From positions 193,750,001 to 193,814,000 of the forward strand of contig OZ038378.1 in assembly GCA_964036045.1 (NCBI GenBank): a stretch of DNA of 64,000 nucleotides, written 5' to 3'. This stretch comes from Eutreptiella sp. 'Long Island Sound 2002' (taxonomy: Eukaryota; Protista; Euglenida). The notes beneath the pieces were generated by a model, which worked only from the letters and a program-made list of their open reading frames with translations, searched no databases and was not told where the DNA came from. Positions 8,829 through 46,778 of the stretch are shown here, piece by piece (position 1 is the first letter of the stretch; every line of letters starts with the position of its first letter). A program made the translations under genes and the position numbers.

Positions 8829-8944
8829 ATTAGAGGATATATATACATATGTATGATATACATACATACATACATATATATGTATATATGCACACACACA
8901 CACACACACACATACATATATAAAGGGGTGCACACACGTGTGCA

Positions 8945-9370
8945 TTATAAGAAATCACAAAACACACGCTTATAGATGAGGTCCGCCTTTTTATCCTTGT
9001 AGGTGGGTTCTGTTGAGGGCGGATTGTGCTTGCACATGTTGCGAAGCACGTCCGCGGTCTTCATATCCAACTCTTCAACCAATTTTTTGTCGTATTGCAT
9101 TCTACTAGAAGCATTTTTGGGGTAATGCTCTAGAACAAAAAAATTCCTTACCACGGATCATCACCTTTGGACGGACCTCATCTACTAAAGGCGGCTTGTC
9201 AGCCGCACACCGGTCACCCAACGCGAATGCCAATACAATGCATGCCAATGTGGCAGTAAATTGCACTCTCCATTTGAGCAATGCCACACATATCTCCGAT
9301 GGACACAAAACGGAAGCATGCGGAGCACACTGTTAAACACCACATTCAGGGCACACGTGCAAAAGGGCAT
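8945..9370 (-). pseudogene. Degenerate coding remnant, possibly a transposase C-terminus with a SAP-like helix pair
   Basis: Frameshifted protein-like text (PLVDEVRPKVMIRG / FFVLEHYPKN...VLRNMCKHN...KKADLIYKRV); resemblance judged by eye only. Confidence 0.25.
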
Positions 9371-25400: not shown

Positions 25401-28400
25401 GGTGAATTCCAAAACACGTTTTGTTTGATAATGTCACCACCCATAGCAATTAAACACCGCTTGTACCACATGCTTTACAACCACTTGATGTAGTTTTCCA
25501 AGGGTGGATATGGGAGCCGTCCTTTGCCCAGGTGTTGGCCAGGTGGGTAGGAGCACTTGTTTGACGTGATCGCCGGGGGAATGTGACGTGGGCGAAATAG
25601 GCCCTCCATAACAAATGTTTGTGGAGTGGGTGTTGCCCGCCTTGTCCCACCACAAGCTGTGGGGCACGTGGCTCCCGCTAGGGGAGTGGGCCTAGGTGCC
25701 GTGCCACAGCGTGAAGCGGCGGTGTGGGGGTGCGGCACCTAATCGGTGCTAGGTGCTGGTGCTGCTAGGAGGGGTACATTGCACTGGGCTGCCCGGTAGG
25801 CCGTGTTTTGCGGCATGTGCCACGATGGTGCCACGGCTACAGTGCCTGACACTCCACTTTCAAGAGGCCTAGTTGTGTAGACTATAGGAGTGTGGCTACG
25901 GTCGGGAGGGGCGGAGCGGGTCTTGATGGACTACTTCCCCCGCCTGACAAAGGGCGGCCCAACGCTCCTCCCTTACGCCCGCCGGCTGAGGCGAGCCCAG
26001 GGGGCAGGGCGGGAGGGGGTGGCTGTTGTAGCGGCCGCGGTGCCCGGGGAAGGACAGAGGCACTGTGGGAGCATGATGCCACGAGCATGGCGCGCCCTTG
26101 TGTCGCCAATGTCCACGAGGGGGGCCGCCAACAGCCTCCCCCCGCCCCCGCCATCTTGCGGTAGGGACCGGGTCACCAAGTGCTGCTCCAGCTGGTGAGT
26201 CACTGTGGGCACAGGCCTTGTCAGAGTGGCTGGGGCGGGCACCGGAGCGGCCACTGCAATGGCGTTGGCAGGTGCTGCCGCGCCAGCTCGGTCCCCGACC
26301 GCCGGACACTCTGGAGCGAAGTGATTAGCCAGCAGCGCAGTGCACGCCACAAGCCTGGTGGGGGGAGGTGGGGGGAGGTGAACCTCCCCTAGGAAGCAAG
26401 GCTTCCGGCACCTATGGGCTTCCCCACGTCTTTTAATGCGCCTCTAATTGCGGTTGCAGCAAGCGCCCAGCGCCCACGAGGGAGGATCCGGGGGAGGGGG
26501 CGCGCCCAACCTGTGAACCCCCCCATTAATTATGGATGGTGGGGCCCGGGGTTATCCCGCGGCACCTTGTGGGATAAGGGCTCGGGGCTATGCCCCATCC
26601 CCACGTAGTCGCAAGGCCCCTCGGGATGCGGGTAGGAGCAGACGGGCAAAGGGAGTACGAACCCCCCCCCCTCCCCCCCGCTTCCCCAAGGGGCAAGCAG
26701 GCCTGCCCCGGGCAGAGTAGGGAGGGCGGCTTGGTGGCGACACAGGCAGTGTCGCAGGGGTCAAATCGGCGCATGTTCCCTAGACAGGCCAGCAGGCTAC
26801 ACTGTTTTCCATGGGGCTGGCAAGGGGGACCCCCCACAAACGGGAGGGTGGGCGCCAAAACCGTTCGTCAGCCCACCACAGGAGCCCCTTGCCCTCTAAA
26901 CATAGACTGATGGACAGAAAAAGTGACATGCCTTGTTATGTAGTTTTCACTCCGATTGGCCATTGCGTGTTTGGGGTGGGGTGGGGTGGTGTTGGAGGAA
27001 TGGTGCTTTGCATCCCACAGTGGAGGGAGGGGATGCACAAACCGCTTCAGTACCCCGCGCCCCCCTTGTATAAGCTACGCCAAAGTCCCAAATTAATACG
27101 GTCCCTACGCCTCCTGTAGCTTGGACACGGGCGTAGCTTGCGCGCGACACATACAACTACCAACACCAGGCACCCACATTCAAAAAGAGAGGATTGCATG
27201 GTGAGCTGGTGCAAGAAAGGGGCATATAATACACAAATATCCCCAAAATCAGAGCTATCTGGGTCAAGTGGGCAAACACTTACAACAAATGTGTCCATGA
27301 CTCTATGTGACTCGCAAATCCGTCACCAAATCCATGTCTCATGTGGCTGCACTACGTTTGGCACCGAATTAAAATTAGGTCCCAGATTAATACGGTCCCT
27401 ACGCCTACTGTAGCTTGGACAACGGCGTAGCTTATACAAGGGGGGGGGGGGGGGTAGTTTTCAGCCTCAACAGCTCAAAAATCAAAATTCTATTGCCTAT
27501 GGCTCAAAAATCAAAATTCTATAGCCTTTGGCAAAGCACCTTGAACAGGGTTGGGGAGCATGTAGGGACGAGGGGTATTGCGGGCAAACACAGTTGTTGG
27601 GTCTCGTGCAGGGGTCATGGGGCACCATGCTGGTCCCCATGGGCACTATAGCGTTCATTTTGGCACCAAATGATGACCCCAACCCATCCCACAGCTCACA
27701 AAAAAAAAGTCTAAAATAATTCAACTTTTTTTTTGGTCCTGATCAAGATGACCTGGTGTACCCTGCTCATCACATGGCACTCGAGATACCTCTCGGAATC
27801 AAGGTTCACAGCTGCCCAGTGCAACAATGATCACAGAAATGACTGTGGTAGCGGATCTGACATGTAGTCCAAAATAATCAAACTTTCAAACATTCTCAAT
27901 GGCCACCGAGAAACCAGCAAAGATGGACCTTTTGGGGGGGGCATAGCCTTGGCTACTTGCCTCGGAGCCGCACCATGGCCGTATTGGCACCTTTTGATGA
28001 CCTAAACCCATCCCAAAGCCGTCGGAATGTGCCATGTGCCATTGAACAGTCTCAAACAGCAATTTCGGCACTTTCGAGGTTCCGTGGCCCCAGCTTGCCT
28101 TCTTTTCTGTTTGTGCGTTGTGGTGGGTGTATATTTCGCTCCCAATTGCTGTTGATCAAATCCTACATTCCTACATTCGCCTTCCATTTGAACCTTGCAT
28201 TCTTTTCTGTGTTGCGTGTTGTGTTTATCTTGCTCGTTTGCACGTTTGCTTGTTGTACTGGGGGGATGTTCGCCAGTACCGGCCCTCGAGTCGTTTCCCC
28301 TGGGCGGCACTTCCGGCGCGGCAAGGGGGTGAGGGGGGGGGGGGGGGGGCTGGTGCTCACGTGAGTGCAGCTGCGGGCACGCACCTTATCTCGGACCATG

Positions 28401-31400
28401 TTGATGTCCACAGGCTCGCCGTACTGCGAGAACGCCACCAGGACGTCTCCCTCCGTGACATTGAATGGTAGACCCCCTGTATCGGCCAGCGCCAACAAAG
28501 TAAAAGCGACCAACGAGCTGCCTCGAAAACAGAGGCCCAGTGCAATGCCCCATCGCACGTGCAGAACAAGCAGCCGACACACAGCACGCAGTGAGCCCGT
28601 TTGAAACCTCACCCTCCCCAATAAGCACTTAGCTACTGAGCACTGGCCTGTCCCCTTCCCCCTCGTGAGCACTGGTAACAGTGTGCTTGCAACCCACAGG
28701 GGGCAGTCAGGGAGGCGCTTGAGGGGGAGGGAGGCGAAAGGGAGGTATCAAGAACGGTTGCAAAACCGGTAAGTGGCGTCTGGAAAGCTATGACAGTCGC
28801 CGTGCTGGCGGTTGCAAAACGGGAAAACGGTTGGAGGTACGTAAGCAGTTGGGGCTGCATGGGGGCGGGAGTGGGGGCGACCCCTTCAAGCGCAGTCCTG
28901 GCGACAGTCCAATTCAGTTCCCGCTCCCAACCCACACAACGCGGGCAGGGGATCCAGAGCGTGGGGAGGTGTCAAAGGGCTTTTTTCTGATTTTGGGGGC
29001 GTTTTTGAATTCCCTGTTTCCTTCCGAGCATTTTGAATGTACTCAAGAGGGCGGGGAGTCAAAGCAACATGCGCGGGAGTACCCGACATGCAAAGCAACA
29101 TGCAGAGCCATGTTCAACTTGCATGCCAGCCCCCTGTCTGCAGTTCAAGCAAAACACAAACTGCGAACCATGAGAACGCAAAGAACCAAAATGTGGTAAG
29201 TAACGCCTCAACAGGCGACCACCCCCTTTTGGTGCTGTGCTACACACCCTCAATGAGTCTCAATGAACAGGCCATTTGGCCACCAGGTGTGTTGATAATC
29301 GTTAATGTGGAAAGGCCGTGTCGTTAGGCTCGAGGGGACTGCAAAGCCTCTCAATGAGCGCTCTCCTGCTGCCTGGGCATGTGTAAGCACGACCTTGGCA
29401 CAGGACCCCTTACCCTGCCAAAGGACACCCCTGACGTTCCTTACCAGGGCTGTTATTTCATGGTTGTGTTAAGAAGACTCACTGGCGGACCTGCTGGTGG
29501 GTGTGCTGCTGTTGTCTTGCATCAGCTCATGTCCCATAAGTGCAGGCAGACCGCCAGTGGACGGGGGGGGGGGCATGATTGCAAACCATATCTGGCATCA
29601 AACACCATCTTGGGCCTTGTGGTATCTGTCTGTCCGCAGTAGGGCACAGGTATTCCACCATCACTCTGTCCTGCCCCATCATGCCCCTCATGGCCCTCTC
29701 ACCTCACAACTTCATATGGCACGATAATGCCACGGGCCATGACAGCTCATCAGGCTGCCGCCTCGCCCTGGGCCCTTCTTCCGTACCTCCGCTGTACTAT
29801 ACACTGACTCATACCTATAAAAATGTACGCTGAATTCCGGTATTCGTGATGCCAACTGTGCTCCTGAGCAGGGACAGCAGACCTCTACGGTTGCCAATGC
29901 CTATGCTCGCCAAGGCAAAACCAAAACCACACAGACCGCAAGGAAAAACCAGGCAAAACCAGAGGCGAAACCAGGCAGAGGATGAGCCAACTCTTCTATC
30001 GTGCCTGAAGTGGGGGGAGGGACAAACATCATGTGCACAGCGAAGGGGAGAGTGTCCATTTCCACTGCATATCAGGGAGCAACAGAAAAAGGAAGCAAAC
30101 AGCCAAGAGGAGGGTGCAGGGGGGGCACAGGGGAGCTGAACTAGACCTCAACCCAATTCCATCCCTTCACATCTGTAGCTCCCAATTTTCCAATTTTGCT
30201 GTGAGTTTCTTGCTACCTGATCCCCAATTGTTCTTTCATTTGACCCCGGGTTTTCCTGGGTTGACCCTGGTTTTTGCACCACTTCTCACCAAACCACAAT
30301 ACATGACACTTTTCTCTTAGTCCGTGAATGAAAAGAGCAGGCCATTTACTGCCAAAACACTGCCAATCACCAATGCAATGCCCGCGAACGTTTTGCCCGC
30401 CGTGGATGCTGGGACAGGCATGGCCTGCATAATCTGAACTGCAGGCATTGTCCATTGTCACAGCCAAAGACGTTACCGCCCCCCCCCCCCCCTGTGCAAC
30501 GACCAGCAAGGTTTAACCATGTGACCTGCGGCTGGTCTTTGGACTATGGTTTCAGGCAAAAGAGTGCCGTTTGATCAGTGGCTGGTTATTGAAAAAGGCC
30601 ATGGGCACTTCTTCATCCTGGAAACTTTTCTCTGGAAATGTGCACAGAAGGTCTACAATTCAAATGGTTCCATAAGGGAGTCAATGGGGTACAAGCCCTT
30701 GTGTTCTGCGGGCAACAAAGTAGCGAACGAAAGCATGCTCTTGTTAACCAATGGGTGGCCGTTGTGCATACATGGAGCATCAATGGTCAGGTTGCAGTGT
30801 CCACATTGGGCCCGCGCGTGCGCCTCACGACTTTCATCGCCCACTGTCCATTTTGTTCGCATCCAGTGCATTCAGGTCCACTGATGTGGACCTGGCCTGT
30901 CCCTCCCTGAATGGTTTGGGCTCCGCTCATCAGGCTACTGGGTCAGGCATACATCCTGATCAGCGGTCACTCCTCCTCTGGGTGCTAGTTAGCTGGCCCC
31001 ATTCGGCCCTCCCAGGTCTAGCATGTCATTGGTCTTTAGGTTGAAGAACCCAGTGGGTACAGGCTGCTGGTTTTGGCATAAAACATACAAGGGGGGGTGC
31101 ATGTTCTGCTTGCTGGGAGGCTCCTCGAAGCAGCTGTACTCTAACCGGCTGGAATCCTCCATTGCCACCAGCTGCAGCTCACAGCGTTACACATTGCGAC
31201 CCCTACATGACCGTCGTGGCTATGGACACATGACACATCTGAACGAGCGGAACCCAGGTGCATAGACAGGTTTACGGCATTCTCATTCATTCGTCACAGC
31301 CCTGTCCTGCATATGCAGGACAGGGCTGTGACGAATGAATGAGAATGCCGTAAACGCGTGTTTGCGAGCGAAGCGAGCAAATACGCGTTTACGTATTTGT

Positions 31401-34400
31401 CCCATTCTGCTTAGCCGGTTTCTCTGTGTGGCAAGCTAGCCTCACAGTTGATACTATGCCCGCTAAAGCTACTCGTGACACTGCTGGGGATCACACAATG
31501 ACAGATCCCACGCAAGATAGTACCCAACCACCAGGCCCATTACCGGGGCCTTGTATCCTGCGCACACCTGCGGCAGTGCAAGCACGAGAAGCGTTCAACC
31601 GATGGAGCGCTACCGCATATCAAGCCCTGACCCGATCTGGGTCACACACTGAGGAGCTGGACCACTGGATGATATCCCAATGGGAAGCTATTGCCGAATC
31701 TGCTGTGGAGGATCACCAAATTCGTGCGCTAGCCGAGGCATGTAACATGGAACAAATCGAGACGGCAGAGTTTGTCGCGGTGCTGGGTGCGTACTGTGGC
31801 CGCAAAGCACTTCGCATGGACTACATGGATGGCACATTTCATGAAGCGCCCCCTACGATTACCGACCTGCCAGCGACGGCGCGAGCTCAAGAACAACGAA
31901 TTAACGAACTGACCGCCGCCCTCCAGAAGAAAGATGCCGAGTTGGAGAAAGCGCGCGTTCCGAGAGCCCCACCCCTCACTGCTGCACGAGTCAATGACCT
32001 GGCGAGCACCCGAATGAGGTTCCAATGGATGAACACCCTGCTCTCAGCTATGCAGGGTTTGCAACAAGTTCCGTTGAATGCCCAAGACTGGACCCAGGAT
32101 GTGTTTATACAAAAGGTGTGGTGCTTACTGCACCTGGAGATGGCCAATAAGCGACAATCCCGGGGGACACCTGTACGTGAACAAGAGGCCACAGCACAGT
32201 CTGGTGGCTCTGTGGAGGTCATCAACAACAGCCCTGCTGGGCAAGCCCACACGGAGCAACGTGACCCTCAGCGAGATTCTCGTAAGCCGGGGCGATGTTT
32301 CAAATGTCACCAGATGGGTCACTGGGCCACCGATTGTCCAGCAGCAGTGGGCCAAGGGTACCTCATTCATCGTGATGGCAAAGAATTTTGGATGTCCGCC
32401 ACTGGAGTGGAGTGGGATACCTCTGAACCACCGCCGGGGAACTGCACCAAATGTGGACAGCGACATTGGTCGCATAAACCGACGGCTACGTGTTCAGGAC
32501 GAGTGGTTCGGCAAGTACAGGCGCAAGCTACGACGTCCGACAAGGTTGAGGCCTGGGATGATGCTATTTTCGAAAACATGGTGAACGAGTTTCGCCAGGC
32601 TGCCGGAAGTGGGCCCGCGGGCCCACAATGACTCACCGACCGACTCCGCTGCTCCGCGCGTGCCCCGCAGACCCGTCAGCCCCCGCGACAGCCCCACAGC
32701 CTGCCGCCCCCACACTCGCACTCGCCATCCACGCGATCACACACACGTCTACCATCCCGTTCGGGGTTAATGCGGTATCCACCATGCTCCGAAAATGGGA
32801 ACCCGGTACTATCCGCACCTATCTCAGCGCCCTTCGGCAGCTCCTCGCACATGCACCCCCCGACAGCACCCTCGCAGACGCCATATCCCTTCGGCTCCTA
32901 CACCGGGCAGCGACCCGCAGGTCACCATCCGCAGCAAAAATACTCGTCTCAGCTATCATTATGTGCCAAAGACTCTCGCTCATCCCCGAAGTCCTCACAG
33001 AGTCCCATCGCCTCACCCTATCGGCAATCGTCAAATATACATCCCACCGCACCATCCCAAAACCCTGGGCAACAATACAGCATGTCCAGTCCATCGGAAG
33101 ATGGCGCATGTATTGGGGGTGGGCCCGCCTGTATTTCCTCATTATGGCCAGCACCATCTACCTTTGGCGAGTGCAAGACGCAGCCGGAATCCAATGGCGC
33201 TGGTTGCAGATCCCTGGCTGAATCACATTTTACGACCATAAAATTAATAGAGAGCTCGTCAGCTATCCCCTCAGTGACTACATGGACGCCTGGCGAGCGT
33301 ACATTGTCGCATGTAAAAGGAGTGACGTCCCCTGGGATGCTGCCGTCATCCCAGGGGGCGCGCGGGAACTCCAACGTGCAATGGCGGACCTCCTGCGATA
33401 CGAAGAGCTGGCTGAAGTGCGATGGCATGGGTGGAAAAAGTTGGGCGCAGCGTTGTTCATCCTACTGGGAGGAGCACTGTCCTCCCTCCAGCGGTGGGGA
33501 AGGTGGCATTCCCCACATCAACCCAGACGCTACTCCCATGCCCCACCCGCATGGCGCCTACCTGACCGAGTCCAGCTCCCGTACCCCGTGGCTACCACCA
33601 ACAGCCCCGTGCGCGATATGGAATGGCGGCTTGTACGACTATCCGAATTATGGCCGCGTGATACGTTTGCCAAGCCATGCACGGCTCCCGTCCGTGCACC
33701 ACAGCAGTTGGAACTCGCTTATGCAGCCACATACCAACCCTCGTCCACAGGCCGCGAGAGCGACGAGACACCGTCCATCGGTGAGTCCACCGATACCGAT
33801 AGATCGGATGTGCAGTCTCAGTGCTCAGAGTCGACGTCGATGGCGCAATCAGAATCGATGGAGGCACCACCAACGACAAATCATGCAATCCACCATGGAG
33901 TTACTACACCACCCCCTGCCGGTGAGCCACTGGCGACATGCCCTGCAACTGCTCCTGGTGGGTGTCCAAGCATGGGTGCTGTTGCTAGCGCTGTGGCTGC
34001 GACGCCTTTACCATCTTCACAAGTGCCAGATGGGGTTCATCATGGCAGCACTGGCGGTTTGGAGGGCCGTATGGGAACCGTGCGACCTGCAGGGCCCATC
34101 AGCGAACCCCCAGCAAAACGTCCTATGTGTGGGCATCAACCCACTTCGGATCCCACACCACACCATGGCTATGAGCTCACCGCGCCTCGGCGCGGGGATG
34201 CATATGCACATTGGCGACCTTTGTGGTTGCGCGAAACTGCATCGGAGCCCGTGCAGTATATGTCACATCCCCATACAACAACATCTCCAACGGAGTGCAG
34301 AGCTCATTGCCCAGAAATTGAAAGTGTCGGTGACGAATGTGACTATGTTGTTGCGGGATTTGATTGTGTTGATGGTGAACCGCCTACCAGTGGACCCCCC

Positions 34401-37400
34401 CCCCAACCCACCTTCCCCAAGTGTGACACCACCCCCGTCCCCGAACCATTCACCCCAACCGCCGCCGGAGCCGCCGCCTTCGCCATTGGCGCCTGTACAC
34501 CAACTACTACACCAGCTGGCCACAGATCCGTCCGTAATCTCCGACACCTCTCCCACAGCACGCCCCAACCACAGCACCGACACCAGCCCGACGGAGGGTA
34601 CCCCTTCGCAAGCATCGGTGACCCCTGACATGGTGCAGCGCGGATTGGGCGATGCGGGACATGTTGACATACCCCAGCCCCTGTGGCAGTCCTGTGCGCC
34701 GGCTAACTACACGTGGGCCACTGAGCAGGCACCACCCCAGTGCCACTCCCATGATCCACTGCTGCTCATGTTGGCTTCTAAATTAGAGGCGTCAGGACTG
34801 CTGTGTGAATGCCCCCCCCATTTGCGCCCAAATGCCAAAGCATATCTCAAACCTAAGTCAGCCCAAAAGTGTGCCTTGATTGTAAATATGATTCCCATCA
34901 ATGACCGTTGTTTGCCCCCCCCCCATTTACCCTCCCAAGTTTAGATTCACTGGCGCATGTAATTACTGTAGCTCTGCTTAGGGGTCGACCCTTGTATTTC
35001 ACTAAACTAGACATCAGTAATATGTTTTGGAGTTGTAAAGTGCCAGCAGAGCACAGGCATGCTGTCCGTATTGGAGTTTGTGGAAAAGTCTTCTCATTTC
35101 CGGGATTGCCTTTTGGCTGGAACGCCAGCCCCGCAATTGCTCAGCAGTTGCTTGCGCTTTACATTCAGCAATTGTACCCGGGGGAGACAGTCGTGATCCA
35201 ATATATGGACGATATTCTAGTGGTAGGACCTGACAAACAACATGTTCAACATCAAACGGACCACCTAATTCACCAGTTTCAAACACATCGTTGGGTAGTT
35301 AGTGCTAAATCCGATGTAGACCCTAAGCATACAGTCACCTGGATGGGCAAACATTTTGATGGCCTGCGTGGAGTTGTTGCCACCGGGACCCAGTATTTGG
35401 TGGGAGTCGTCGTGCTCTGGATTAAGCTTGGTACACGAGGTTACCAGAGCACACTGTTACAGCGCCTTTTGGGCAAACTGCAGTGGGCTCTACGACCTGG
35501 CCGCGGAGCCGCTGCCTTTTTGGCAGGGCCGTATGCATGGCTTCAGCAGGGGCCTCCAGTGGCAAAGTGCACGCCCCCGGCAGTTTTGCGTGCGCTTGCT
35601 GAGGCAGCAGCTGCTGCCATTGTGCCTTGGACCGCGCCGGTTACCCCCCCGTGTGGCCCCACGTGGTTTGTAGATGCAGCAGGCACCTGGACGGGATACT
35701 GGGGAGCCATCTGGAGCCCCTACATGCGGCCTAAGACTTTCCAGCTCCCTGATTGGGTGCACACACAGCAAGCTGCTGAGCTTGCGGCTGTTGTTAACGC
35801 AGCACGAGTGGCCGCATACAAAGGCCATCATTCATTGAACTTGCTAATAGACAACCAAGCCGCAATTTGCACTGCAATTTCCGGTAAAGCTAAGTTTCGT
35901 TGTCCTGCACAATTGAGATTACTGCGTCAGTTACAGCATATTTTACGCTGGTCTGGGTTACAGCTGGCATGTTATTGGGTCCCCAGTGCCTTCAATCCTG
36001 CTGACCCCCCATCACGGTGGTGGAAATACCCCACTCCCATTCTTACCGATTTGGAGGCCTGGACCGTGTACAGCAGACTGCTGGCTTCACCTTTTGTGCC
36101 ACAGTTTGTGGCACAGACCAAGTATCGTGGGTGACACGGTAAATTACATTTTATGCAGGACAGGGCTGTGACGAATGAATGAGAATGCCGTAAACGTGTG
36201 TTTGCGAGCGAAGCGAGCAAATACGCGTTTACGTATTTGTCCCATTCTGCTTAGCCGGTTTCTCTGTGTGGCAAGCTACTCACAGCCCTGTCCTGCATAA
36301 GTACTTGCAAAGTACTGCATATTTACAGGCAGCCAACGAGGGCCAGTTCAGTCTGAAGACTGATTCAAGTAGACTGGGGGGCGGGCGGGTGGGGCTGTGA
36401 GGCTAGCTTGCCACACAGAGAAACCGGCTAAGCAGAATGGGACAAATACGTAAACGCGTATTTGCTCGCTTCGCTCGCAAACACACGTTTACGGCATTCT
36501 CATTCATTCGTCACAGCCCTGTCCTGCATAAAATGTAATTTACCGTGTCACCCACGATACTTGGTCTGTGCCACAAACTGTGGCACAAAAGGTGAAGCCA
36601 GCAGTCTGCTGTACACGGTCCAGGCCTCCAAATCGGTAAGAATGGGAGTGGGGTATTTCCACCACCGTGATGGGGGGTCAGCAGGATTGAAGGCACTGGG
36701 GACCCAATAACATGCCAGCTGTAACCCAGACCAGCGTAAAATATGCTGTAACTGACGCAGTAATCTCAATTGTGCAGGACAACGAAACTTAGCTTTACCG
36801 GAAATTGCAGTGCAAATTGCGGCTTGGTTGTCTATTAGCAAGTTCAATGAATGATGGCCTTTGTATGCGGCCACTCGTGCTGCGTTAACAACAGCCGCAA
36901 GCTCAGCAGCCTGCTGTGTGTGCACCCAATCAGGGAGCTGGAAAGTCTTAGGCCGCATGTAGGGGCTCCAGATGGCTCCCCAGTATCCCGTCCAGGTGCC
37001 TGCTGCATCTACAAACCACGTGGGGCCACACGGGGGGGTAACCGGCGCGGTCCAAGGCACAATGGCAGCAGCTGCTGCCTCAGCAAGCGCACGCAAAACT
37101 GCCGGGGGCGTGCACTTTGCCACTGGAGGCCCCTGCTGAAGCCATGCATACGGCCCTGCCAAAAAGGCAGCGGCTCCGCGGCCAGGTCGTAGAGCCCACT
37201 GCAGTTTGCCCAAAAGGCGCTGTAACAGTGTGCTCTGGTAACCTCGTGTACCAAGCTTAATCCAGAGCACGACGACTCCCACCAAATACTGGGTCCCGGT
37301 GGCAACAACTCCACGCAGGCCATCAAAATGTTTGCCCATCCAGGTGACTGTATGCTTAGGGCCTACATCGGATTTAGCACTAACTACCCAACGATGTGTT

Positions 37401-40400
37401 TGAAACTGGTGAATTAGGTGGTCCGTTTGATGTTGAACATGTTGTTTGTCAGGTCCTACCACTAGAATATCGTCCATATATTGGATCACGACTGTCTCCC
37501 CCGGGTACAATTGCTGAATGTAAAGCGCAAGCAACTGCTGAGCAATTGCGGGGCTGGCGTTCCAGCCAAAAGGCAATCCCGGAAATGAGAAGACTTTTCC
37601 ACAAACTCCAATACGGACAGCATGCCTGTGCTCTGCTGGCACTTTACAACTCCAAAACATATTACTGATGTCTAGTTTAGTGAAATACAAGGGTCGACCC
37701 CTAAGCAGAGCTACAGTAATTACATGCGCCAGTGAATCTAAACTTGGGAGGGTAAATGGGGGGGGGGGCAAACAACGGTCATTGATGGGAATCATATTTA
37801 CAATCAAGGCACACTTTTGGGCTGACTTAGGTTTGAGATATGCTTTGGCATTTGGGCGCAAATGGGGGGGGCATTCACACAGCAGTCCTGACGCCTCTAA
37901 TTTAGAAGCCAACATGAGCAGCAGTGGATCATGGGAGTGGCACTGGGGTGGTGCCTGCTCAGTGGCCCACGTGTAGTTAGCCGGCGCACAGGACTGCCAC
38001 AGGGGCTGGGGTATGTCAACATGTCCCGCATCGCCCAATCCGCGCTGCACCATGTCAGGGGTCACCGATGCTTGCGAAGGGGTACCCTCCGTCGGGCTGG
38101 TGTCGGTGCTGTGGTTGGGGCGTGCTGTGGGAGAGGTGTCGGAGATTACGGACGGATCTGTGGCCAGCTGTTGTAGTAGTTGGTGTACAGGCGCCAATGG
38201 CGAAGGCGGCGGCTCCGGCGGCGGTTGGGGTGAATGGTTCGGGGACGGGGGTGGTGTCACACTTGGGGAAGGTGGGTTGGGGGGGGGGTCCACTGGTAGG
38301 CGGTTCACCATCAACACAATCAAATCCCGCAACAACATAGTCACATTCGTCACCGACACTTTCAATTTCTGGGCAATGAGCTCTGCACTCCGTTGGAGAT
38401 GTTGTTGTATGGGGATGTGACATATACTGCACGGGCTCCGATGCAGTTTCGCGCAACCACAAAGGTCGCCAATGTGCATATGCATCCCCGCGCCGAGGCG
38501 CGGTGAGCTCATAGCCATGGTGTGGTGTGGGATCCGAAGTGGGTTGATGCCCACACATAGGACGTTTTGCTGGGGGTTCGCTGATGGGCCCTGCAGGTCG
38601 CACGGTTCCCATACGGCCCTCCAAACCGCCAGTGCTGCCATGATGAACCCCATCTGGCACTTGTGAAGATGGTAAAGGCGTCGCAGCCACAGCGCTAGCA
38701 ACAGCACCCATGCTTGGACACCCACCAGGAGCAGTTGCAGGGCATGTCGCCAGTGGCTCACCGGCAGGGGGTGGTGTAGTAACTCCATGGTGGATTGCAT
38801 GATTTGTCGTTGGTGGTGCCTCCATCGATTCTGATTGCGCCATTGACGTCGACTCTGAGCACTGAGACTGCACATCCGATCTATCGGTATCGGTGGACTC
38901 ACCGATGGACGGTGTCTCGTCGCTCTCGCGGCCTGTGGACGAGGGTTGGTATGTGGCTGCATAAGCGAGTTCCAACTGCTGTGGTGCACGGACGGGAGCC
39001 GTGCATGGCTTGGCAAACGTATCACGCGGCCATAATTCGGATAGTCGTACAAGCCGCCATTCCATATCGCGCACGGGGCTGTTGGTGGTAGCCACGGGGT
39101 ACGGGAGCTGGACTCGGTCAGGTAGGCGCCATGCGGGTGGGGCATGGGAGTAGCGTCTGGGTTGATGTGGGGAATGCCACCTTCCCCACCGCTGGAGGGA
39201 GGACAGTGCTCCTCCCAGTAGGATGAACAACGCTGCGCCCAACTTTTTCCACCCATGCCATCGCACTTCAGCCAGCTCTTTGTATCGCAGGAGGTCCGCC
39301 ATTGCACGTTGGAGTTCCCGCGCGCCCCCTGGGATGACGGCAGCATCCCAGGGGACGTCACTCCTTTTACATGCGACAATGTACGCTCGCCAGGCGTCCA
39401 TGTAGTCACTGAGGGGATAGCTGACGAGCTCTCTATTAATTTTATGGTCGTAAAATGTGATTCAGCCAGGGATCTGCAACCAGCGCCATTGGATTCCGGC
39501 TGCGTCTTGCACTCGCCAAAGGTAGATGGTGCTGGCCATAATGAGGAAATACAGGCGGGCCCACCCCCAATACATGCGCAATCTTCCGATGGACTGGACA
39601 TGCTGTATTGTTGCCCAGGGTTTTGGGATGGTGCGGTGGGATGTATATTTGACGATTGCCGATAGGGTGAGGCGATGGGACTCTGTGAGGACTTCGGGGA
39701 TGAGCGAGAGTCTTTGGCACATAATGATAGCTGAGACGAGTATTTTTGCTGCGGATGGTGACCTGCGGGTCGCTGCCCGGTGTAGGAGCCGAAGGGATAT
39801 GGCGTCTGCGAGGGTGCTGTCGGGGGGTGCATGTGCGAGGAGCTGCCGAAGGGCGCTGAGATAGGTGCGGATAGTACCGGGTTCCCATTTTCGGAGCATG
39901 GTGGATACCGCATTAACCCCGAACGGGATGGTAGACGTGTGTGTGATCGCGTGGATGGCGAGTGCGAGTGTGGGGGCGGCAGGCTGTGGGGCTGTCGCGG
40001 GGGCTGACGGGTCTGCGGGGCACGCGCGGAGCAGCGGAGTCGGTCGGTGAGTCATTGTGGGCCCGCGGGCCCACTTCCGGCAGCCTGGCGAAACTCGTTC
40101 ACCATGTTTTCGAAAATAGCATCATCCCAGGCCTCAACCTTGTCGGACGTCGTAGCTTGCGCCTGTACTTGCCGAACCACTCGTCCTGAACACGTAGCCG
40201 TCGGTTTATGCGACCAATGTCGCTGTCCACATTTGGTGCAGTTCCCCGGCGGTGGTTCAGAGGTATCCCACTCCACTCCAGTGGCGGACATCCAAAATTC
40301 TTTGCCATCACGATGAATGAGGTACCCTTGGCCCACTGCTGCTGGACAATCGGTGGCCCAGTGACCCATCTGGTGACATTTGAAACATCGCCCCGGCTTA

Positions 40401-42959
40401 CGAGAATCTCGCTGAGGGTCACGTTGCTCCGTGTGGGCTTGCCCAGCAGGGCTGTTGTTGATGACCTCCACAGAGCCACCAGACTGTGCTGTGGCCTCTT
40501 GTTCACGTACAGGTGTCCCCCGGGATTGTCGCTTATTGGCCATCTCCAGGTGCAGTAAGCACCACACCTTTTGTATAAACACATCCTGGGTCCAGTCTTG
40601 GGCATTCAACGGAACTTGTTGCAAACCCTGCATAGCTGAGAGCAGGGTGTTCATCCATTGGAACCTCATTCGGGTGCTCGCCAGGTCATTGACTCGTGCA
40701 GCAGTGAGGGGTGGGGCTCTCGGAACGCGCGCTTTCTCCAACTCGGCATCTTTCTTCTGGAGGGCGGCGGTCAGTTCGTTAATTCGTTGTTCTTGAGCTC
40801 GCGCCGTCGCTGGCAGGTCGGTAATCGTAGGGGGCGCTTCATGAAATGTGCCATCCATGTAGTCCATGCGAAGTGCTTTGCGGCCACAGTACGCACCCAG
40901 CACCGCGACAAACTCTGCCGTCTCGATTTGTTCCATGTTACATGCCTCGGCTAGCGCACGAATTTGGTGATCCTCCACAGCAGATTCGGCAATAGCTTCC
41001 CATTGGGATATCATCCAGTGGTCCAGCTCCTCAGTGTGTGACCCAGATCGGGTCAGGGCTTGATATGCGGTAGCGCTCCATCGGTTGAACGCTTCTCGTG
41101 CTTGCACTGCCGCAGGTGTGCGCAGGATACAAGGCCCCGGTAATGGGCCTGGTGGTTGGGTACTATCTTGCGTGGGATCTGTCATTGTGTGATCCCCAGC
41201 AGTGTCACGAGTAGCTTTAGCGGGCATAGTATCAACTGTGAGGCTAGCTTGCCACACAGAGAAACCGGCTAAGCAGAATGGGACAAATACGTAAACGCGT
41301 ATTTGCTCGCTTCGCTCGCAAACACACGTCTTCCTCTTCATCCATGAGACCAGATGGAGGGACTACAGTGGCTGCTGGGATACCATTGGGGACATCGGCG
41401 ACTGCCCCTGCGGCGTGCGAAAGGTGTTATGCGCAGGTCCCACAAAATACGGGGTTGCTGCTGGGGCTCGCGTGACTGGCATCATCACCCCTCATGCTGG
41501 TTTGGGTGCTGGTACCAGGGAGAGGTGAAGGGGGGTTTGTATCCATTCTCTTGGCCAGCTGAACCGGCACACACACTTCAATGTCCCATAGTGGGGATTG
41601 GGGGGGGGGGGGGGGGCCTGGTGGACTTTCCCAGTTGGCTGCAGACCCTTCGCTGGGGTGTCCCCTGCAAGAGCGCCTCTGAGGGGGGGGGGGGAGGTGG
41701 CTGTGCATCCTCTGGGCACTCTTCTGGTTTCCACTCCTCCCACCCTGCAATGGGGTCCTCTTCAGTCTCCTCCTCTGTGGGCTCTTCCTGCCGCCTGGGA
41801 TGCACCGATACGTGGCCAAAAACGAGGAGGGGGAGGGGTTGCGCCGTCCCTCATCTGCCAAATGGTCTGCCCTGGAATCACCTGGTATTTCGATATGGGA
41901 CGGTGCGTGAAGCCACTTTACTTTCTCCCCAAGCTGTTCCGTTATGCACAAAATGGCCTCCCACAGATCCCTGCGTTGGATGGGCCCCTTGGCATTGCCC
42001 CAGTTGTGGCGCCGCCATCGCTGCGCCCACCCCAAAACCCCTTCCACAATCAATAAGCAGCCCGGGCAAATAAGGGACCGCTAACCAGGCCTGTGCCCCT
42101 CCTGCGCTCGTAGGGACGCCCGCAGCTCTCCTCGGGTATTCGTTTGTTCCTCATTCAGCGGGATAAATGCTGCTCTGTCCCTTCGTCACACCGTACCATC
42201 ACCCTCATATTCACAAAGAAGTACCAGGTAGGGGTCCACTGTCGTTCACTGAACTTTAGAGCATAACGTACCAACCATGATGCCCTGACTGCAGTCCAGA
42301 GGACCAGGCCCAGGGGGATACCCCTTCCCTACACAACCACAGCTGAAGGCAAGGGAAACGATAGTCCGACCGGGCTCCTGCGCTTAGAAAAGATGGCTCT
42401 TGGGGACTTTTGGGCCCTAAGCAAACCCAAATCGGCACACCCAGTGTGCTTTACACGATTTACAAGAATCAGGTCATGATGCGTCCCTGGATCTGAGAAT
42501 GTCAGAGGGTAGTTGAACTTGAGGTCCCTCACATGTTGCTTGGTGCGAAGACAGGACAGTTGCAGACCCACTCCCATGTGTTTTGTGCACAAAATGAGGT
42601 GAAGTGCCAAGAGACGGAAGACATGCCAACTGAGACACTCAGGATTCAATGGTGAGAATGCCCGTGGGACGACAGATTGTTGCCCTTGAAGCGTCAAAAG
42701 GGAGAGCTCATGAGGCTTCGTGTGTCGCGGGCTGCTGTGTTCTACACGACGTGGACTCAGGCAGGCCACATATTCCCTGTGCTTGCACTAGGCACTCATA
42801 GTGCACCCCATCGCAGTCTCAACGTGGAGTCAAAAAACGCAAGATGGAGGTGTACAGTGCTTACCCTGAGGGTTCTATGACAGGGCGTACCTCAGAGCCA
42901 TCCACACCCAGAGCGAGCTCCTTCTTGTTGATGCGGTCGATTTCCTTCACGACATTCAT
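12827..42959 (-). CDS. RBMX2: RBMX2/Snu17(Ist3)-like RRM protein (RES complex), 7 exons, 1242-nt CDS, 413 aa
   Basis: Exons 42959-42891, 29863-29815, 28476-28385, 20866-20777, 17523-17407, 15104-14928, 13474-12827 join in phase across GT-AG introns. They give [111 protein letters not shown], the typical RBMX2 RRM, followed by a K-rich and RD-rich tail. Confidence 0.92.
14928..15104 (-). CDS. RBMX2: RBMX2-like exon 6
   Basis: GACAG acceptor and GTACGC donor; 59 codons [15 protein letters not shown]...SSDSSGSE. Confidence 0.8.
16643..16838. mobile_element. R1-related repeat bounded by a C-run and a G-run
   Basis: C-run start, internal TTTGTAACCGACAGTTAACGCCAACCGC (reverse of the R1 GCGGTT motifs), ends CCTTCTAATGCATCCC + G-run. 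Confidence 0.45.
17407..17523 (-). CDS. RBMX2: RBMX2-like exon 5
   Basis: TTACAG acceptor and GTCTGT donor; [15 protein letters not shown]. Confidence 0.9.
17849..18079. repeat. 36-bp exact direct repeat pair
   Basis: ACATGCTTTACATAGCTTGGATGGTCATTGTGAGTG at 17849-17884 and 18044-18079. Confidence 0.8.
20777..20866 (-). CDS. RBMX2: RBMX2-like exon 4 (RNP1)
   Basis: GCGCAG acceptor and GTCCCC donor; [30 protein letters not shown]. Confidence 0.93.
22340..23340 (-). pseudogene. RT/RNase H pseudogene of element #2
   Basis: HYLDDVSLV...[12 protein letters not shown]...KWLGK aligns with QYMDDILVV...[11 protein letters not shown]...TWMGK of the intact RT; stops and frameshifts present. Confidence 0.75.
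23440..24400 (+). pseudogene. Gag C-terminal knuckle + tyrosine recombinase pseudogene of element #2
   Basis: [21 protein letters not shown] vs [21 protein letters not shown]; GTIKFYDRK vs G*ITFYDHK; [10 protein letters not shown]...WAKW...RRY...RLPHP vs [11 protein letters not shown]...WGRW...RRY...QLPYP. Confidence 0.8.
25390..26830 (-). pseudogene. Highly degenerate YR retrotransposon remnant #3 (YR C-terminus, spacer, RT N-terminus)
   Basis: [25 protein letters not shown] (about 26670-26760) resembles the YR H..R/GAA/WG.W block; PHSLW and NVFWN resemble PQPLW and NMFWS of the intact RT, in the same order. Confidence 0.4.
27053..27454. mobile_element. Tc1/mariner-type MITE, C-run TIR family, copy 2
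   Basis: Same TIR as 3845-4423; TA at 27051-27052 and 27455-27456; different internal length. Confidence 0.85.
28385..28476 (-). CDS. RBMX2: RBMX2-like exon 3 (RNP2)
   Basis: GATACAG acceptor and GTGCGT donor; [31 protein letters not shown]. Confidence 0.93.
28715..28893. mobile_element. MITE-like repeat, family R1
   Basis: GCGCTTGAGGGG / CCCCTTCAAGCGC inverted ends; GCGGTTGCAAAAC motifs. Confidence 0.55.
29815..29863 (-). CDS. RBMX2: RBMX2-like exon 2
   Basis: CTCAG acceptor and GTATGA donor; [17 protein letters not shown]. Confidence 0.9.
30450..30870 (-). pseudogene. Degenerate RNase HI remnant (retroelement-derived)
   Basis: Frameshifted motifs YPIDS and [10 protein letters not shown]...GN resemble RNase HI blocks; by eye only. 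Confidence 0.3.
31270..31355. repeat. Perfect 86-bp palindrome (B repeat head-to-head)
   Basis: GTTTACGG...CCTGCAT|ATGCAGG...CCGTAAAC centred at 31312/31313. Confidence 0.95.
31456..32631 (+). CDS. gag: Gag-like protein (391 aa), plus copy
   Basis: CCHC knuckle [14 protein letters not shown], second Cys/His motif CTKCGQRH, coiled coil [22 protein letters not shown]. Confidence 0.85.
   Translation: MPAKATRDTAGDHTMTDPTQDSTQPPGPLPGPCILRTPAAVQAREAFNRWSATAYQALTRSGSHTEELDHWMISQWEAIAESAVEDHQIRALAEACNMEQIETAEFVAVLGAYCGRKALRMDYMDGTFHEAPPTITDLPATARAQEQRINELTAALQKKDAELEKARVPRAPPLTAARVNDLASTRMRFQWMNTLLSAMQGLQQVPLNAQDWTQDVFIQKVWCLLHLEMANKRQSRGTPVREQEATAQSGGSVEVINNSPAGQAHTEQRDPQRDSRKPGRCFKCHQMGHWATDCPAAVGQGYLIHRDGKEFWMSATGVEWDTSEPPPGNCTKCGQRHWSHKPTATCSGRVVRQVQAQATTSDKVEAWDDAIFENMVNEFRQAAGSGPAGPQ
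32628..34628 (+). CDS. Tyrosine recombinase ORF with one in-frame TGA (33219-33221) and a long Pro/Thr-rich tail, plus copy
   Basis: Motifs LWRVQDA (R), FYDHK (K), [14 protein letters not shown]; ORFs 32628-33221 and 33282-34628 are in the same frame. Confidence 0.8.
32770..36134 (+). pseudogene. pol: Pol (RT + RNase H), plus copy, frameshifted at a C10 run near 34915-34924
   Basis: [21 protein letters not shown]; RNase H FVDAA / AAEL / IDNQ / NPAD. The minus copy has C11 and is intact, so the shift may be a homopolymer sequencing error. Confidence 0.85.
36152..36530. repeat. Tail-to-tail junction: B-A, inverted B(1-20), unique about 95 bp, then A-B reversed
   Basis: B 36152-36195, A 36194-36285 (2-nt deletion), TCACAGCCCTGTCCTGCATA 36280-36299, unique 36300-36394, reverse A 36395-36488, reverse B 36487-36530. 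Confidence 0.9.
36548..39913 (-). CDS. pol: Pol ORF (1121 aa from first ATG; RT/RNase H in the last about 500 aa), minus copy, intact
   Basis: Uninterrupted ORF with DIRS-type RT (YMDD) and RNase H motifs; the frame stays open upstream to the gag stop. Confidence 0.9.
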   Translation of the reverse strand: MRYPPCSENGNPVLSAPISAPFGSSSHMHPPTAPSQTPYPFGSYTGQRPAGHHPQQKYSSQLSLCAKDSRSSPKSSQSPIASPYRQSSNIHPTAPSQNPGQQYSMSSPSEDCACIGGGPACISSLWPAPSTFGECKTQPESNGAGCRSLAESHFTTIKLIESSSAIPSVTTWTPGERTLSHVKGVTSPGMLPSSQGARGNSNVQWRTSCDTKSWLKCDGMGGKSWAQRCSSYWEEHCPPSSGGEGGIPHINPDATPMPHPHGAYLTESSSRTPWLPPTAPCAIWNGGLYDYPNYGRVIRLPSHARLPSVHHSSWNSLMQPHTNPRPQAARATRHRPSVSPPIPIDRMCSLSAQSRRQWRNQNRWRHHQRQIMQSTMELLHHPLPVSHWRHALQLLLVGVQAWVLLLALWLRRLYHLHKCQMGFIMAALAVWRAVWEPCDLQGPSANPQQNVLCVGINPLRIPHHTMAMSSPRLGAGMHMHIGDLCGCAKLHRSPCSICHIPIQQHLQRSAELIAQKLKVSVTNVTMLLRDLIVLMVNRLPVDPPPNPPSPSVTPPPSPNHSPQPPPEPPPSPLAPVHQLLQQLATDPSVISDTSPTARPNHSTDTSPTEGTPSQASVTPDMVQRGLGDAGHVDIPQPLWQSCAPANYTWATEQAPPQCHSHDPLLLMLASKLEASGLLCECPPHLRPNAKAYLKPKSAQKCALIVNMIPINDRCLPPPPFTLPSLDSLAHVITVALLRGRPLYFTKLDISNMFWSCKVPAEHRHAVRIGVCGKVFSFPGLPFGWNASPAIAQQLLALYIQQLYPGETVVIQYMDDILVVGPDKQHVQHQTDHLIHQFQTHRWVVSAKSDVGPKHTVTWMGKHFDGLRGVVATGTQYLVGVVVLWIKLGTRGYQSTLLQRLLGKLQWALRPGRGAAAFLAGPYAWLQQGPPVAKCTPPAVLRALAEAAAAAIVPWTAPVTPPCGPTWFVDAAGTWTGYWGAIWSPYMRPKTFQLPDWVHTQQAAELAAVVNAARVAAYKGHHSLNLLIDNQAAICTAISGKAKFRCPAQLRLLRQLQHILRWSGLQLACYWVPSAFNPADPPSRWWKYPTPILTDLEAWTVYSRLLASPFVPQFVAQTKYRG
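38055..40055 (-). CDS. Tyrosine recombinase ORF with in-frame TGA (39462-39464), minus copy
   Basis: Same motifs and same internal stop as the plus copy. Confidence 0.8.
40052..41227 (-). CDS. gag: Gag-like protein (391 aa), minus copy
   Basis: Same translation as the plus copy in the ORF track; CCHC knuckle. Confidence 0.85.
   Translation of the reverse strand: MPAKATRDTAGDHTMTDPTQDSTQPPGPLPGPCILRTPAAVQAREAFNRWSATAYQALTRSGSHTEELDHWMISQWEAIAESAVEDHQIRALAEACNMEQIETAEFVAVLGAYCGRKALRMDYMDGTFHEAPPTITDLPATARAQEQRINELTAALQKKDAELEKARVPRAPPLTAARVNDLASTRMRFQWMNTLLSAMQGLQQVPLNAQDWTQDVFIQKVWCLLHLEMANKRQSRGTPVREQEATAQSGGSVEVINNSPAGQAHTEQRDPQRDSRKPGRCFKCHQMGHWATDCPAAVGQGYLIHRDGKEFWMSATGVEWDTSEPPPGNCTKCGQRHWSHKPTATCSGRVVRQVQAQATTSDKVEAWDDAIFENMVNEFRQAAGSGPAGPQ
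41890..42180 (-). pseudogene. RNase HI domain remnant (non-LTR retroelement type)
   Basis: [12 protein letters not shown]...[11 protein letters not shown]...RRDLWEAI...[25 protein letters not shown], with an internal stop and decayed catalytic residues. Confidence 0.75.
42891..42959 (-). CDS. RBMX2: RBMX2-like exon 1
   Basis: [23 protein letters not shown]; GTACGC donor. Confidence 0.9.
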
Positions 42960-44950: not shown

Positions 44951-45830
44951 AACCAATGGATTCACCTGATACATGGATAAATGCATCAAGATGCAATCAA
45001 TGCGTTTGTACCACAATACACAAACCGTAACACCATGGACACACCAAAAAAGAAGACCACCTTTCTAGTGTAACGGGGAGTCCCTGTGCTGTGAGCACCA
45101 CACACTACTTTTGTGGAAAGTACACCCGAAAAACTGTGACTTTTACACTCTCCCAAAATGTCCCACCATGTCACTTTCCTTTTTTGTTTTGCTCGACTTT
45201 TGAAGTTTGCGAAGTTTGAAGTTTACTACCTAGGCCCCGCCAAGAGGCCCTGGTGGAGCACATGCTGGAGGCCGGTAACTACCTAGGCTGGTAAAGCAAA
45301 CGCTGGAAGCATGTAACTACTTCGGCCCCACCATGGCCTTGGTGGAGCAAACCGAAACAAGTGGCAAAAGGCCTGAATATGCTGCACACCGCTGATGGCA
45401 CTAGAACGCTCTGATTCCTGATTCCGAGAATTCTCGAGTACCATCGGGTAAGAGGGCTTTGCCAGCTTACCCAGGTCTGAAACAAAAAAGTATGCTGCAC
45501 ACCGCTGATGGGTAGCACTTGGTGATCCCCTGGAATCCCCTAGCATTCTGTTACGTCTCCAACATGAGTGGTGGTGAGCACCCTCCAAACTCCACAGTTT
45601 TGGGAAAGGCTTTGTGTGGAGCTTGCTAGCGCCGGCATGGGAGGGGCGCCAAGGGGCAGCAGTAGCACTTGTGAGTAGTAGGGCAATTGTGCCACTCTCA
45701 CCAAGTAAGAATAGTTTTCTTCAGTTGATGGGGGTGGCCGAGTTGCGGGGGGAAGGTCATCTTTCTAATTTAGGGGGAGCATCTGACCGGGTGCTCACAC
45801 GGAGTGGCTACTTGGCTATCTATGAGAAAG

Positions 45831-45902
45831 GTGTTGTGTTGTGTTGTGTTGTGTTGTGTTGTGTTGTGTTGTGTTGTGTTGTGTTGTGTTGTGCTGTGTT
45901 GT
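45831..45902. repeat. (GTGTT)n microsatellite
   Basis: About 14 pentamer units. Confidence 0.95.
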
Positions 45903-46778
45903 TTCTTTCTCCTGTTTCGGCGGGCACCGATATGGCAAGGCAGACATAGCCACTTTCTGGCTCTGTAAAACCTGCCCCAATGCGGGAACCAATGGAACCA
46001 ATGCCCATTGGTTCCGTTGGGAGGTTGGGGGGGGGGGGCATGTTGGACATGTTGTTCAATCCAAAATGTGCAGGCCATGTTTGGAAAGTGGCATGGTGGG
46101 CAATCAAGGCGTGACAGCACATGCTGTACTAGCGGATATGAAATGTGCAACCCTATCAGAACACTTACCTTGTGGGGGTTGGACATTGTGAGATCTCAGA
46201 AACACTAGACTCCAGGATCTTACCTGTGCACTATCGGCTGGGATGGTCACAAGCCTCAAGCTAAGCTGTAGGCGCCCTGGTGCTACTGCTCACTCCTGGA
46301 CCCCCCAAAAACGGCCAAGGGGGGGAGACAGGGAATAGAAGCCTTTTGGGCTGCTGCATCCTTTTTCTCGTCAGCCTGTTGCCTTCCTCTATTAGCCGAC
46401 TGGGGAGCATTGTAGCCCCATTAGAAAAGGGGTGGTGGTGGGGGGGGGGGAGGGGGGCTAGTGTGATGTGTACCTCCCATGTGCAGAGGTTGCGGTCATG
46501 GGCCTCTAAACCCACTGATAGCTGACGATCCCCACTTCTTGATAGTAGGAATCCTAGCACACGTGATCCATCCCACGAAGGACGCAAGCAGAAAACGGCT
46601 TAGACTGCAGCAACCAGTGCAGAGAGCCTACAAAACTGTCAAGAAGTGATGCTAGTTTGTTGATTGGGTCGACCTTTTGTCACTTGCAGAGATGAAAGAG
46701 GTATGATGCAACCCAATATTCTGTCCACATCTTCCTTGCCGGGCGTGCAGTGCTCCCCCCTCCCCCAGACCGCCTGCC

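Follow-up and report, generated by a model that had tools for sequence, protein, structure and literature searches.

How does a retrotransposon come to lie in a chromosome as two mirror-image copies whose outermost ends are the two halves of a single repeat junction? This question is raised by positions 31270-41329 of a 64,000-nt stretch of the euglenid Eutreptiella sp. 'Long Island Sound 2002' (contig OZ038378.1, positions 193,750,001 to 193,814,000), hereafter the window, whose coordinates are used below unless another locus is named. The segment consists of two tail-to-tail copies of a ~5.08-kb retrotransposon coding for gag, a tyrosine recombinase (YR), a reverse transcriptase (RT) and a putative RNase H. 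We estimate a probability of roughly 0.7 that a circle holding two inverted copies of this element was inserted by the YR, in a single event, at one B/A core. An original prediction, made from the letters of the window, had offered such a circle as one of two origins, and our comparison supports it, as it fits every junction, the canonical outer ends, the B-A1 order of the plus arm and the existence of a second dimer.

The window contig corresponds to ctg10908_37x_l of the ENA assembly ERZ25074135. A search with the RT region returned a cluster of 21 near-identical proteins, every one from that assembly, and ten family loci from it were compared. The loci include six complete single copies (L002, L004, L007, L008, L009 and L010), one 3'-truncated copy (L001), the window's own locus (L006 and L011) and a second dimer (L003, also L005). 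Over 21 kb, the window and L006 differ only in a G-homopolymer at 27440-27455, which is one nt shorter in the window (15 nt) than in L006 (16 nt). The window and ERZ25074135 appear to be a single assembly, or the data of a single organism, in two versions.

The single copies provide the reference against which the dimer can be read. Between its flanks, a single copy is arranged as A1 (93 nt) - gag - YR/pol - B1 (44 nt) A2 - U (95 nt) - B2 (44 nt). This split-direct-repeat layout, A1 ... B1A2 ... B2, was found in 6/6 complete single copies and in a sister family of 77% identity (L013). The repeats of the single copies are direct split repeats only, and the inverted terminal repeats and internal complementary region of DIRS1-like elements were not found in them. 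Across nine insertions, the 5' flank ended in AAAC (five cases), AAC (two), AC (one) or C (one), while the element always ended at its 3' side in ..GCCGTAAAC (..GTAAAC); the internal B1A2 junction holds one AAAC. Target duplication was absent in eight of the nine junction pairs, and a short AAAC-like core was common to the circle junction and the target. The junction beside the gag leader had been used in all nine insertions and the internal B1/A2 junction in none, which indicates a specific recombination site. In this family, the B/A1 site consists of GTAAAC (end of B) followed directly by GTGTGTTTGC (start of A1). Such insertion agrees with the model proposed for the order, which has a circular intermediate and a short species-specific core, of which one copy comes from the target (PMC7192593). 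In normal entry, the B/A1 junction of a circular DNA (core AAAC) would thus recombine with a target having 1-4 nt of the core, without duplication.

Based on the inverted-repeat comparison, the two arms of the window dimer extend over 31354-36278 and 36404-41329 (about 4.93 kb each), and a gapped alignment extends them to 31354-36285 and 36395-41329. The arms differ by seven substitutions, of which six are internal and one lies at 31357 (a private T>C in the plus-arm A1), by one C10/C11 run-length difference and by a 2-nt deletion at the plus-arm end. Both comparisons bear out the 10-kb inverted YR-retrotransposon dimer that had been predicted. On the plus strand, with primes marking reverse-complemented segments, the left half reads flank, B2' (31270-31313) and B-A1-gag-YR/pol-B1-A2 (31313-36285), and the right half reads B2' positions 20-1 (36280-36299), U' (36300-36394), A2'B1', pol'-YR'-gag', A1' (to 41329) and flank. 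The 125 nt between the arms (36279-36403), previously taken for a spacer, are in fact element sequence, namely the 3' tail of the minus arm with U and the start of B2, and occur in every single copy. No host DNA lies between the arms; the centre of the dimer is made up of U and the B2 stub, both belonging to the minus arm.

The outer ends of the dimer follow the rule of a single insertion. The right outer end stops at 41329 (..CAAACACACGT), and the 43 nt that it lacks are found at 31270-31312 in the same orientation. When 41329 is joined to 31272, the product is identical in every letter to the internal junction 36477-36530, so that the outer ends are indeed, as had been proposed, the two halves of one repeat junction. 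Probes for the repeats matched only four places in the 64 kb, with 0 expected, and the exact 43-nt match of the outer ends is far beyond chance. The B repeat at 31270-31313 is identical to B2 of L002, L004 and L007-L010, and the flank begins at 31269. The outer ends therefore equal those of a single canonical insertion in minus orientation, with the 3' end on the left and the 5' end on the right, and they obey its core rule; the GT at 41328-41329 (AC of the core) may come from either the target or the element. As predicted, the flanks rejoin without target duplication, as ..CATAGACAG-GT-CTTCCTC.., and the predicted empty site is ..AGACAGGTCTTCC...

The rejoined flanks had also been said to restore a minus-strand reading frame. 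The frame is indeed open across the join, but it has just 75 codons and continues in frame from the degenerate 41427-42053 open reading frame (ORF) after the stop codon of the latter, which makes it a weak argument. The rejoined frame was examined by translation, and domain searches covered the flank ORFs separately. The target is probably an old retroelement remnant rather than a demonstrated host exon.

Inside the dimer, B lies directly upstream of A1 in the plus arm. No integrated single copy has this order, as A1 there abuts the flank, and the B-A1 of the plus arm therefore derives from a closed or pre-integration junction. The same observation makes it improbable that a normal minus-oriented single insertion was later duplicated in place, in inverted orientation, by a replication or repair error such as fold-back or a template switch resembling origin-dependent inverted-repeat amplification (ODIRA). 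In yeast, replication is known to give rise to inverted duplications and inverted-dimer circles (PMC4689423), and the tail junction does contain microhomology. However, copying an integrated element puts flank beside A1, where the plus arm has B, and at the far left a complete B2 end adjoins the flank. Moreover, there is no third copy or triplication, and at an unrelated locus the head axis lies at exactly the same place, B position 1. The second origin that had been considered, a tandem rearranged in place, found no support, since no tandem was seen and duplication in place would copy flank next to A1.

The unrelated locus holds L003, one more inverted dimer among the ten family loci; a look for others had been recommended in the original prediction. 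This dimer lies on ctg10808_38x_l at locus positions 8650-18858, within about 1.205-1.216 Mb of the contig, and the window dimer lies within about 1.818-1.830 Mb of ctg10908; the flanks of L003 are unrelated to those of the window dimer, and its topology is the same: flank / B' / B-A1-...-A2-U-B2(1-21) / B2'(21-1)-U'-...-A1' / flank. At its head, B' and B meet at B position 1, both at full length and with one base changed, and the tail forms a perfect palindrome whose centre falls after B2 position 21. One of its arms carries a 10-nt GGACA expansion, and its outer ends obey the AAAC rule. The head axis thus lies at B position 1 in both dimers, and the tail reaches B2 position 20-21 in both and never further, whereas integrated copies have the full 44-nt B2.

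Kinship of the arms was judged from an 11-copy alignment of single copies and dimer arms. Eight private substitutions, including a TGG>TGA change in the YR gene, are common to both window arms and occur in none of the L003 arms and in none of the single copies. The two L003 arms are 5 columns apart from each other and at least 8 from other copies, and are closest relatives of each other. Since the arms are sisters within each locus, the two dimers formed independently; dimers arose at least twice among the ten loci sampled. It is accordingly very improbable that the dimer is a heritable unit, moving by excision and re-integration or by read-through transcription, with both loci descending from one dimer. 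The like topology of the two loci would suit such a unit, and the circle would re-form if the YR excised the dimer at its two outer half-sites. Against this, each arm clusters with its partner at the same locus, the two dimers have different sequences at their head and tail junctions, and no arm-specific variants common to both loci were seen. A frameshifted arm was considered as a shared marker of a dimer lineage and rejected: the pol frameshifts (-1, +1 and +2) all fall in one C10-C13 run and represent independent slips or homopolymer read errors.

Loci of two related families were also examined for dimers, and neither holds one. L012, of a 45%-identity family, is a nest of diverged copies with a 9.8-kb direct duplication and without an inverted repeat. 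In this locus (3745-7476; 8918-11106 vs 18688-20879), we observed a 1345-bp tandem repeat of three units and a 9.77-kb direct retroelement duplication, and gag-like and pol-like genes were called on opposite strands. L013 is a single copy interrupted by another insertion, a ~1.25-kb insert (L013:8536-9788) with a Harbinger-type DDE_Tnp_4 ORF.

The recurrence at L003 also bears on whether the palindrome is real. Near-perfect 5-kb inverted repeats are difficult to assemble, and a fold-back or chimeric join in the long-read metagenome assembly might have made a false palindrome; the window and L006, which may be the same assembly, are not independent evidence in this respect. We nevertheless consider such an artefact quite improbable. 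The arms differ by seven substitutions, the B'/B and A2/B2' sequences are absent from single copies, so that reads must contain them, and the junctions lie exactly at element landmarks. Additionally, L003 repeats the topology with different details, and the coverage of the two contigs (37x and 38x) equals that of the remaining genome. Each arm carries 2-5 private changes and each single copy 3-8, a load that would be as expected for real, separately mutating genomic copies of similar age, unlike an assembly fold-back.

Two separate insertions, in which a second copy entered beside a resident copy or into its B2, would recall the self-targeting of DIRS-1, which often enters other DIRS-1 copies (PMC7192593). 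A canonical incomer, however, starts with A1 and ends with U-B2, whereas the plus arm starts with B and ends with A2, without U or B2; with the arms being sisters that have the eight private variants in common, we regard this explanation as extremely unlikely.

Judged from its coding content, the dimer unit is a YR retrotransposon, as had been predicted. The RT matched Pfam RVT_1 with E values of 4e-13 to 6e-13; in the minus-arm pol this domain occupies residues 715-847 and is followed by an RNase H-like C-terminus. Among PDB sequences, pol matched HIV-2 RT, HIV-1 RT, foamy-virus RT and Ty3 RT. The putative RNase H is indicated by a weak match to the C-terminal (RNase H) model of hepadnaviral polymerases, with E values of 0.008-0.045 that do not reach the model's cut-off. 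No methyltransferase-like domain was found after the RNase H: pol ends ~20 nt before B1, with no further Pfam domain. A single YR sequence had no match in Pfam or PDB. From 142 YR homologues found, a 24-sequence profile matched Cre (E 2.5e-5) and XerD (E 4.8e-4), 6 of the 24 matched Pfam Phage_integrase, and the catalytic pattern R..K..H..W..Y (R129, K153, H215, W241 and Y250) was conserved in the YR alignment.

The gene order is gag - YR - RT/RNase H, with the YR ORF located between gag and RT and overlapping ~1.8 kb of the 5' part of pol. In the single copy L002, the YR ORF (L002:10177-12021, 614 aa) and the pol ORF (L002:10001-13528, 1175 aa) lie in different frames, both open over ~1.8 kb; their window equivalents are 32628-34628 (YR) and 32770-36134 (pol). 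The N-terminal 650 residues of pol and the C-terminal 320 residues of the YR are of low complexity and without domain match. The split of the plus-arm pol is caused by the C10 run at 34915-34924, where the reading frame requires C11. An exact look-up of the 1121-aa pol ORF returned no recorded entry, and Rfam had no match within the 64-kb window. The coordinates of the repeats and genes are given in Table 1.

Table 1. Repeat segments, junctions and genes of the inverted dimer and the adjoining ORF of its right flank, in window coordinates.
Feature	Position	Strand	Basis or remark
Full B repeat, 44 nt, reverse-complemented	31270..31313	-	Canonical 3' end B2 of the minus unit (..GCCGTAAAC); left outer end of the dimer
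Head-to-head palindrome B'/B, perfect, 86 bp	31270..31355	.	Axis between 31312 and 31313, i.e. B position 1, with 2-nt overlap
B then A1, plus arm	31313..31447	+	Intact pre-integration B/A1 junction; AAAC core at 31352-31355
B1-A2, plus arm	36152..36285	+	Private 2-nt (GC) deletion near A2 end; arm stops here without U or B2
Tail junction	36279..36299	.	Plus-arm A2 end (CTCACAG), TCACAG microhomology, then reverse complement of minus-arm B2 positions 20-1
U, unique 3' segment of the minus arm, 95 nt	36300..36394	-	Aligns between A2 and B2 of L002, L004 and L007-L010
A2 and B1, minus arm, canonical form	36395..36530	-	Repeat comparison with single copies
A1, minus arm, canonical 5' end; right outer end of the dimer	41236..41329	-	Repeat and junction comparison
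gag-like ORF with CCHC zinc knuckle, plus arm	31456..32631	+	ORF and domain search
gag-like ORF (CCHC), minus arm	40052..41227	-	ORF and domain search
YR ORF, plus arm	32628..33560	+	TGA at 33219-33221 vs TGG in copies outside the window; overlaps pol in another frame
YR ORF, minus arm	39120..40055	-	Same TGA stop; ORF ends at 39462
pol ORF (long N-terminal part, RT, putative RNase H), plus arm	32770..36134	+	Split into 32770-34944 and 34908-36134
pol ORF, minus arm, uninterrupted, 1121 aa from first ATG	36548..39913	-	C run is C11
Degenerate ORF with partial RNase H domain (C-terminal half), immediately right of the dimer	41427..42053	-	Flank ORF domain search; not part of the dimer

The junctions suggest how the inverted-dimer circle may have formed and entered the chromosome. 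Junction anatomy, canonical ends, recurrence at a second locus and sister arms are read at the sequence level; the circle, the order of events and the choice between fold-back and end-joining are the parts that we infer. The pre-integration circle would have consisted of two mirror units, each extending from B position 1 (B-A1-...-B1A2-U) to B2 position 20-21. Their heads would have been joined at B position 1, producing the 86-bp palindrome, and their tails at the B2 stub. The dimerisation step must be non-YR, because YR recombination of two circles would yield a direct and not an inverted dimer. A single linear intermediate may have been copied back on itself (fold-back or copy-back synthesis) and then closed, or two linear cDNAs may have been joined at their ends. 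The YR, possibly acting in trans, would then have recombined one of the two head-proximal B/A1 cores with the chromosome; the recombined junction would have been split to form the two outer ends, while the other B/A1 junction would have been kept intact inside.

With respect to the tail of the window dimer, B2 positions 12-20 (GGGCTGTGA) are complementary over 9 nt to TCACAGCCC at the A2/U boundary. When the 3' region is taken as far as B2 position 21, this TCACAGCCC/GGGCTGTGA stem closes its predicted fold, both as RNA and as DNA (z -1.9 and -2.5), and the 2-nt slip is present in the copied (plus) arm only. A strand ending at B2 position 20 may thus have paired over these 9 nt with the A2/U boundary and then been extended, leaving U as the asymmetric centre (loop), with the copied plus arm beginning at the A2 end. 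The window tail therefore favours copy-back in this model, its junction being as expected from extension of a paired 3' end. In L003, the tail palindrome has no loop, which would suit a terminal turn-around or a blunt join, and this form could equally be ancestral, with the asymmetric centre of the window arising by deletion. Hairpin-primed second-strand synthesis by reverse transcriptases and the Tetrahymena rDNA palindrome are related fold-back processes, and Poulter and Goodwin reportedly proposed fold-back priming for DIRS-1 RNA.

An extension of this mechanism, which we put forward as speculative and rather doubtful, would regard the dimer junctions as fossils of the free linear intermediate. 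Such an intermediate would span B position 1 to B2 position 20-21, with a ~20-nt terminal redundancy allowing circularisation, and its 3' end would prime itself at the A2/U boundary. Inverted-dimer circles would then be a frequent by-product (2/10 loci) and possible sources of hairpin RNA against their own family.

Several observations weigh against insertion of an inverted-dimer circle by the element's YR. An exact 12-bp direct repeat (CGCCAATCGAAC) lies on either side of the single copy in L007, at 6302-6313 and 11388-11399. Within the 21-kb L007 locus, CGCCAATCGAAC occurs in just those two places and resembles a target duplication, which the simple model does not predict because YR integration should leave none. 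In the HxxR region, the YR has Lys-Lys, compared with Arg-Arg in most relatives. At residues 215-219 (L002:10177-11100 numbering), it reads WHGWKK, as do its two closest relatives (P0044 and P0046), whereas most homologues read WHxWRR. The second catalytic arginine of HxxR appears to be replaced by lysine in the dimer's family, and activity of a YR of this KK type is assumed here.

Additionally, both window arms carry the YR nonsense codon, no progenitor with it was present among the sampled copies, and the truncated 197-aa YR was found on the window's contig only. The stop-bearing YR may reflect either an unsampled progenitor, with the dimer mobilised in trans, or gene conversion between the arms after insertion; in the latter case, the sister-arm argument would be blurred. 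In L013, from the one sister family examined, conservation of the 9-bp tail complementarity was not seen at the corresponding place, and the pairing is therefore treated as opportunistic microhomology and not as a proven primer. The right-flank ORF was found on the window's own contig only, with no empty allele or second haplotype, and BLAST comparison of 2 kb of each flank with all compared loci and the rest of the window revealed no paralogous empty site. Scans of JGI (Joint Genome Institute) metagenomes for the head palindrome and the B/A junction gave 0 matches, and no extrachromosomal circle was seen. The sample covers about half of the estimated 20-25 family copies, and the assembly across the 10-kb near-palindrome was assessed from contigs.

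Other features of the window lie outside the dimer. Pentanucleotide arrays occur at 58428-59700, as (TGTAG)n in two blocks ~400 nt apart, and at 45807-45918, as (TGTTG)n, and strong GC and AT skew was observed at 58-60 kb. Further, unrelated repeat families are suggested by direct repeats dispersed in the window, with 82-86% identity, and by short inverted repeats with 95%, at 3849-4423 vs 27060-27451, 3412-3488 vs 4533-4609 and 3596-3675 vs 3768-3847. Two minus-strand ORFs, 57642-58244 and 60155-60925, have armadillo-type matches (ARM_LRRK2 and Arm) and are probably exons of a host gene.

How YR retrotransposons replicate is described largely by a model on paper. Circles are not known to have been captured, and the only experimental replication work, on DIRS-1, found mostly linear single-stranded cDNA (PMC7192593). 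The intact B/A1 junction kept beside a split one in the window is direct sequence evidence for a molecule already closed there when it integrated, and the same locus provides direct sequence evidence for integration as a crossover at a 1-4 nt core. The matching head and tail axes of two independent events lead to testable predictions for the ends of the free intermediate. Near-perfect palindromes of ten kilobases are, in addition, fragile sites and may serve as sources of hairpin RNA for silencing, and a family making them at an appreciable rate may limit itself. Dependent on read-level confirmation, the inverted dimer would be a structural variant of interest to transposon specialists. Searches for inverted, head-to-head or palindromic YR-retrotransposon dimers found no description in the literature that they covered.

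Among known elements, the one described here resembles VIPER-like elements more closely than Ngaro, PAT or DIRS1, to judge by its gene order, split repeats, lack of a methyltransferase domain and hepadnavirus-like RNase H signal. With VIPER-like and Ngaro-like elements (PMC4157794, PMC6681497, PMC7192593), it shares an RT, a CCHC-bearing gag and a YR extensively overlapping pol, to which the putative RNase H would be added, as well as split direct repeats, the absence of a methyltransferase domain and short-core insertion without target duplication. The order gag - YR - RT/RNase H combined with split direct repeats is that of VIPER-like elements, whereas Ngaro has the order gag - RT/RNase H - YR with internal repeats downstream of the YR; in the present element, the YR lies upstream of RT. 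It differs from the A1-...-B1A2B2 layout of both groups by the 95-nt unique U between A2 and B2, and the window locus differs from both in being an inverted dimer.

In the circle model of Cappello and Lodish and of Goodwin and Poulter for DIRS-1 and split-repeat elements, as in the reading proposed here for the window, the internal repeat junction matches the joined termini, and the YR integrates a double-stranded circle at a short core. The circles of that model have a single unit, whereas the window has two mirror units whose internal junctions expose the unit ends. In the formation of inverted-dimer circles by ODIRA in yeast (PMC4689423), a linear or forked molecule closed at both ends gives a head-to-head/tail-to-tail circular dimer with junction microhomology, as proposed here; in our case, however, the substrate would be a retrotransposon, inserted at a new site by site-specific recombination and not by homologous recombination at the locus of origin. 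Lastly, like Mu killer and Ac killer of maize (PMC3440606, PMC13635294), its closest counterparts in possible consequence, the window locus holds a long inverted duplication of the coding sequence of an active transposon and could in principle give rise to a hairpin RNA, although the maize loci are rearranged DNA transposons with demonstrated silencing, whereas the window dimer is known from its sequence.

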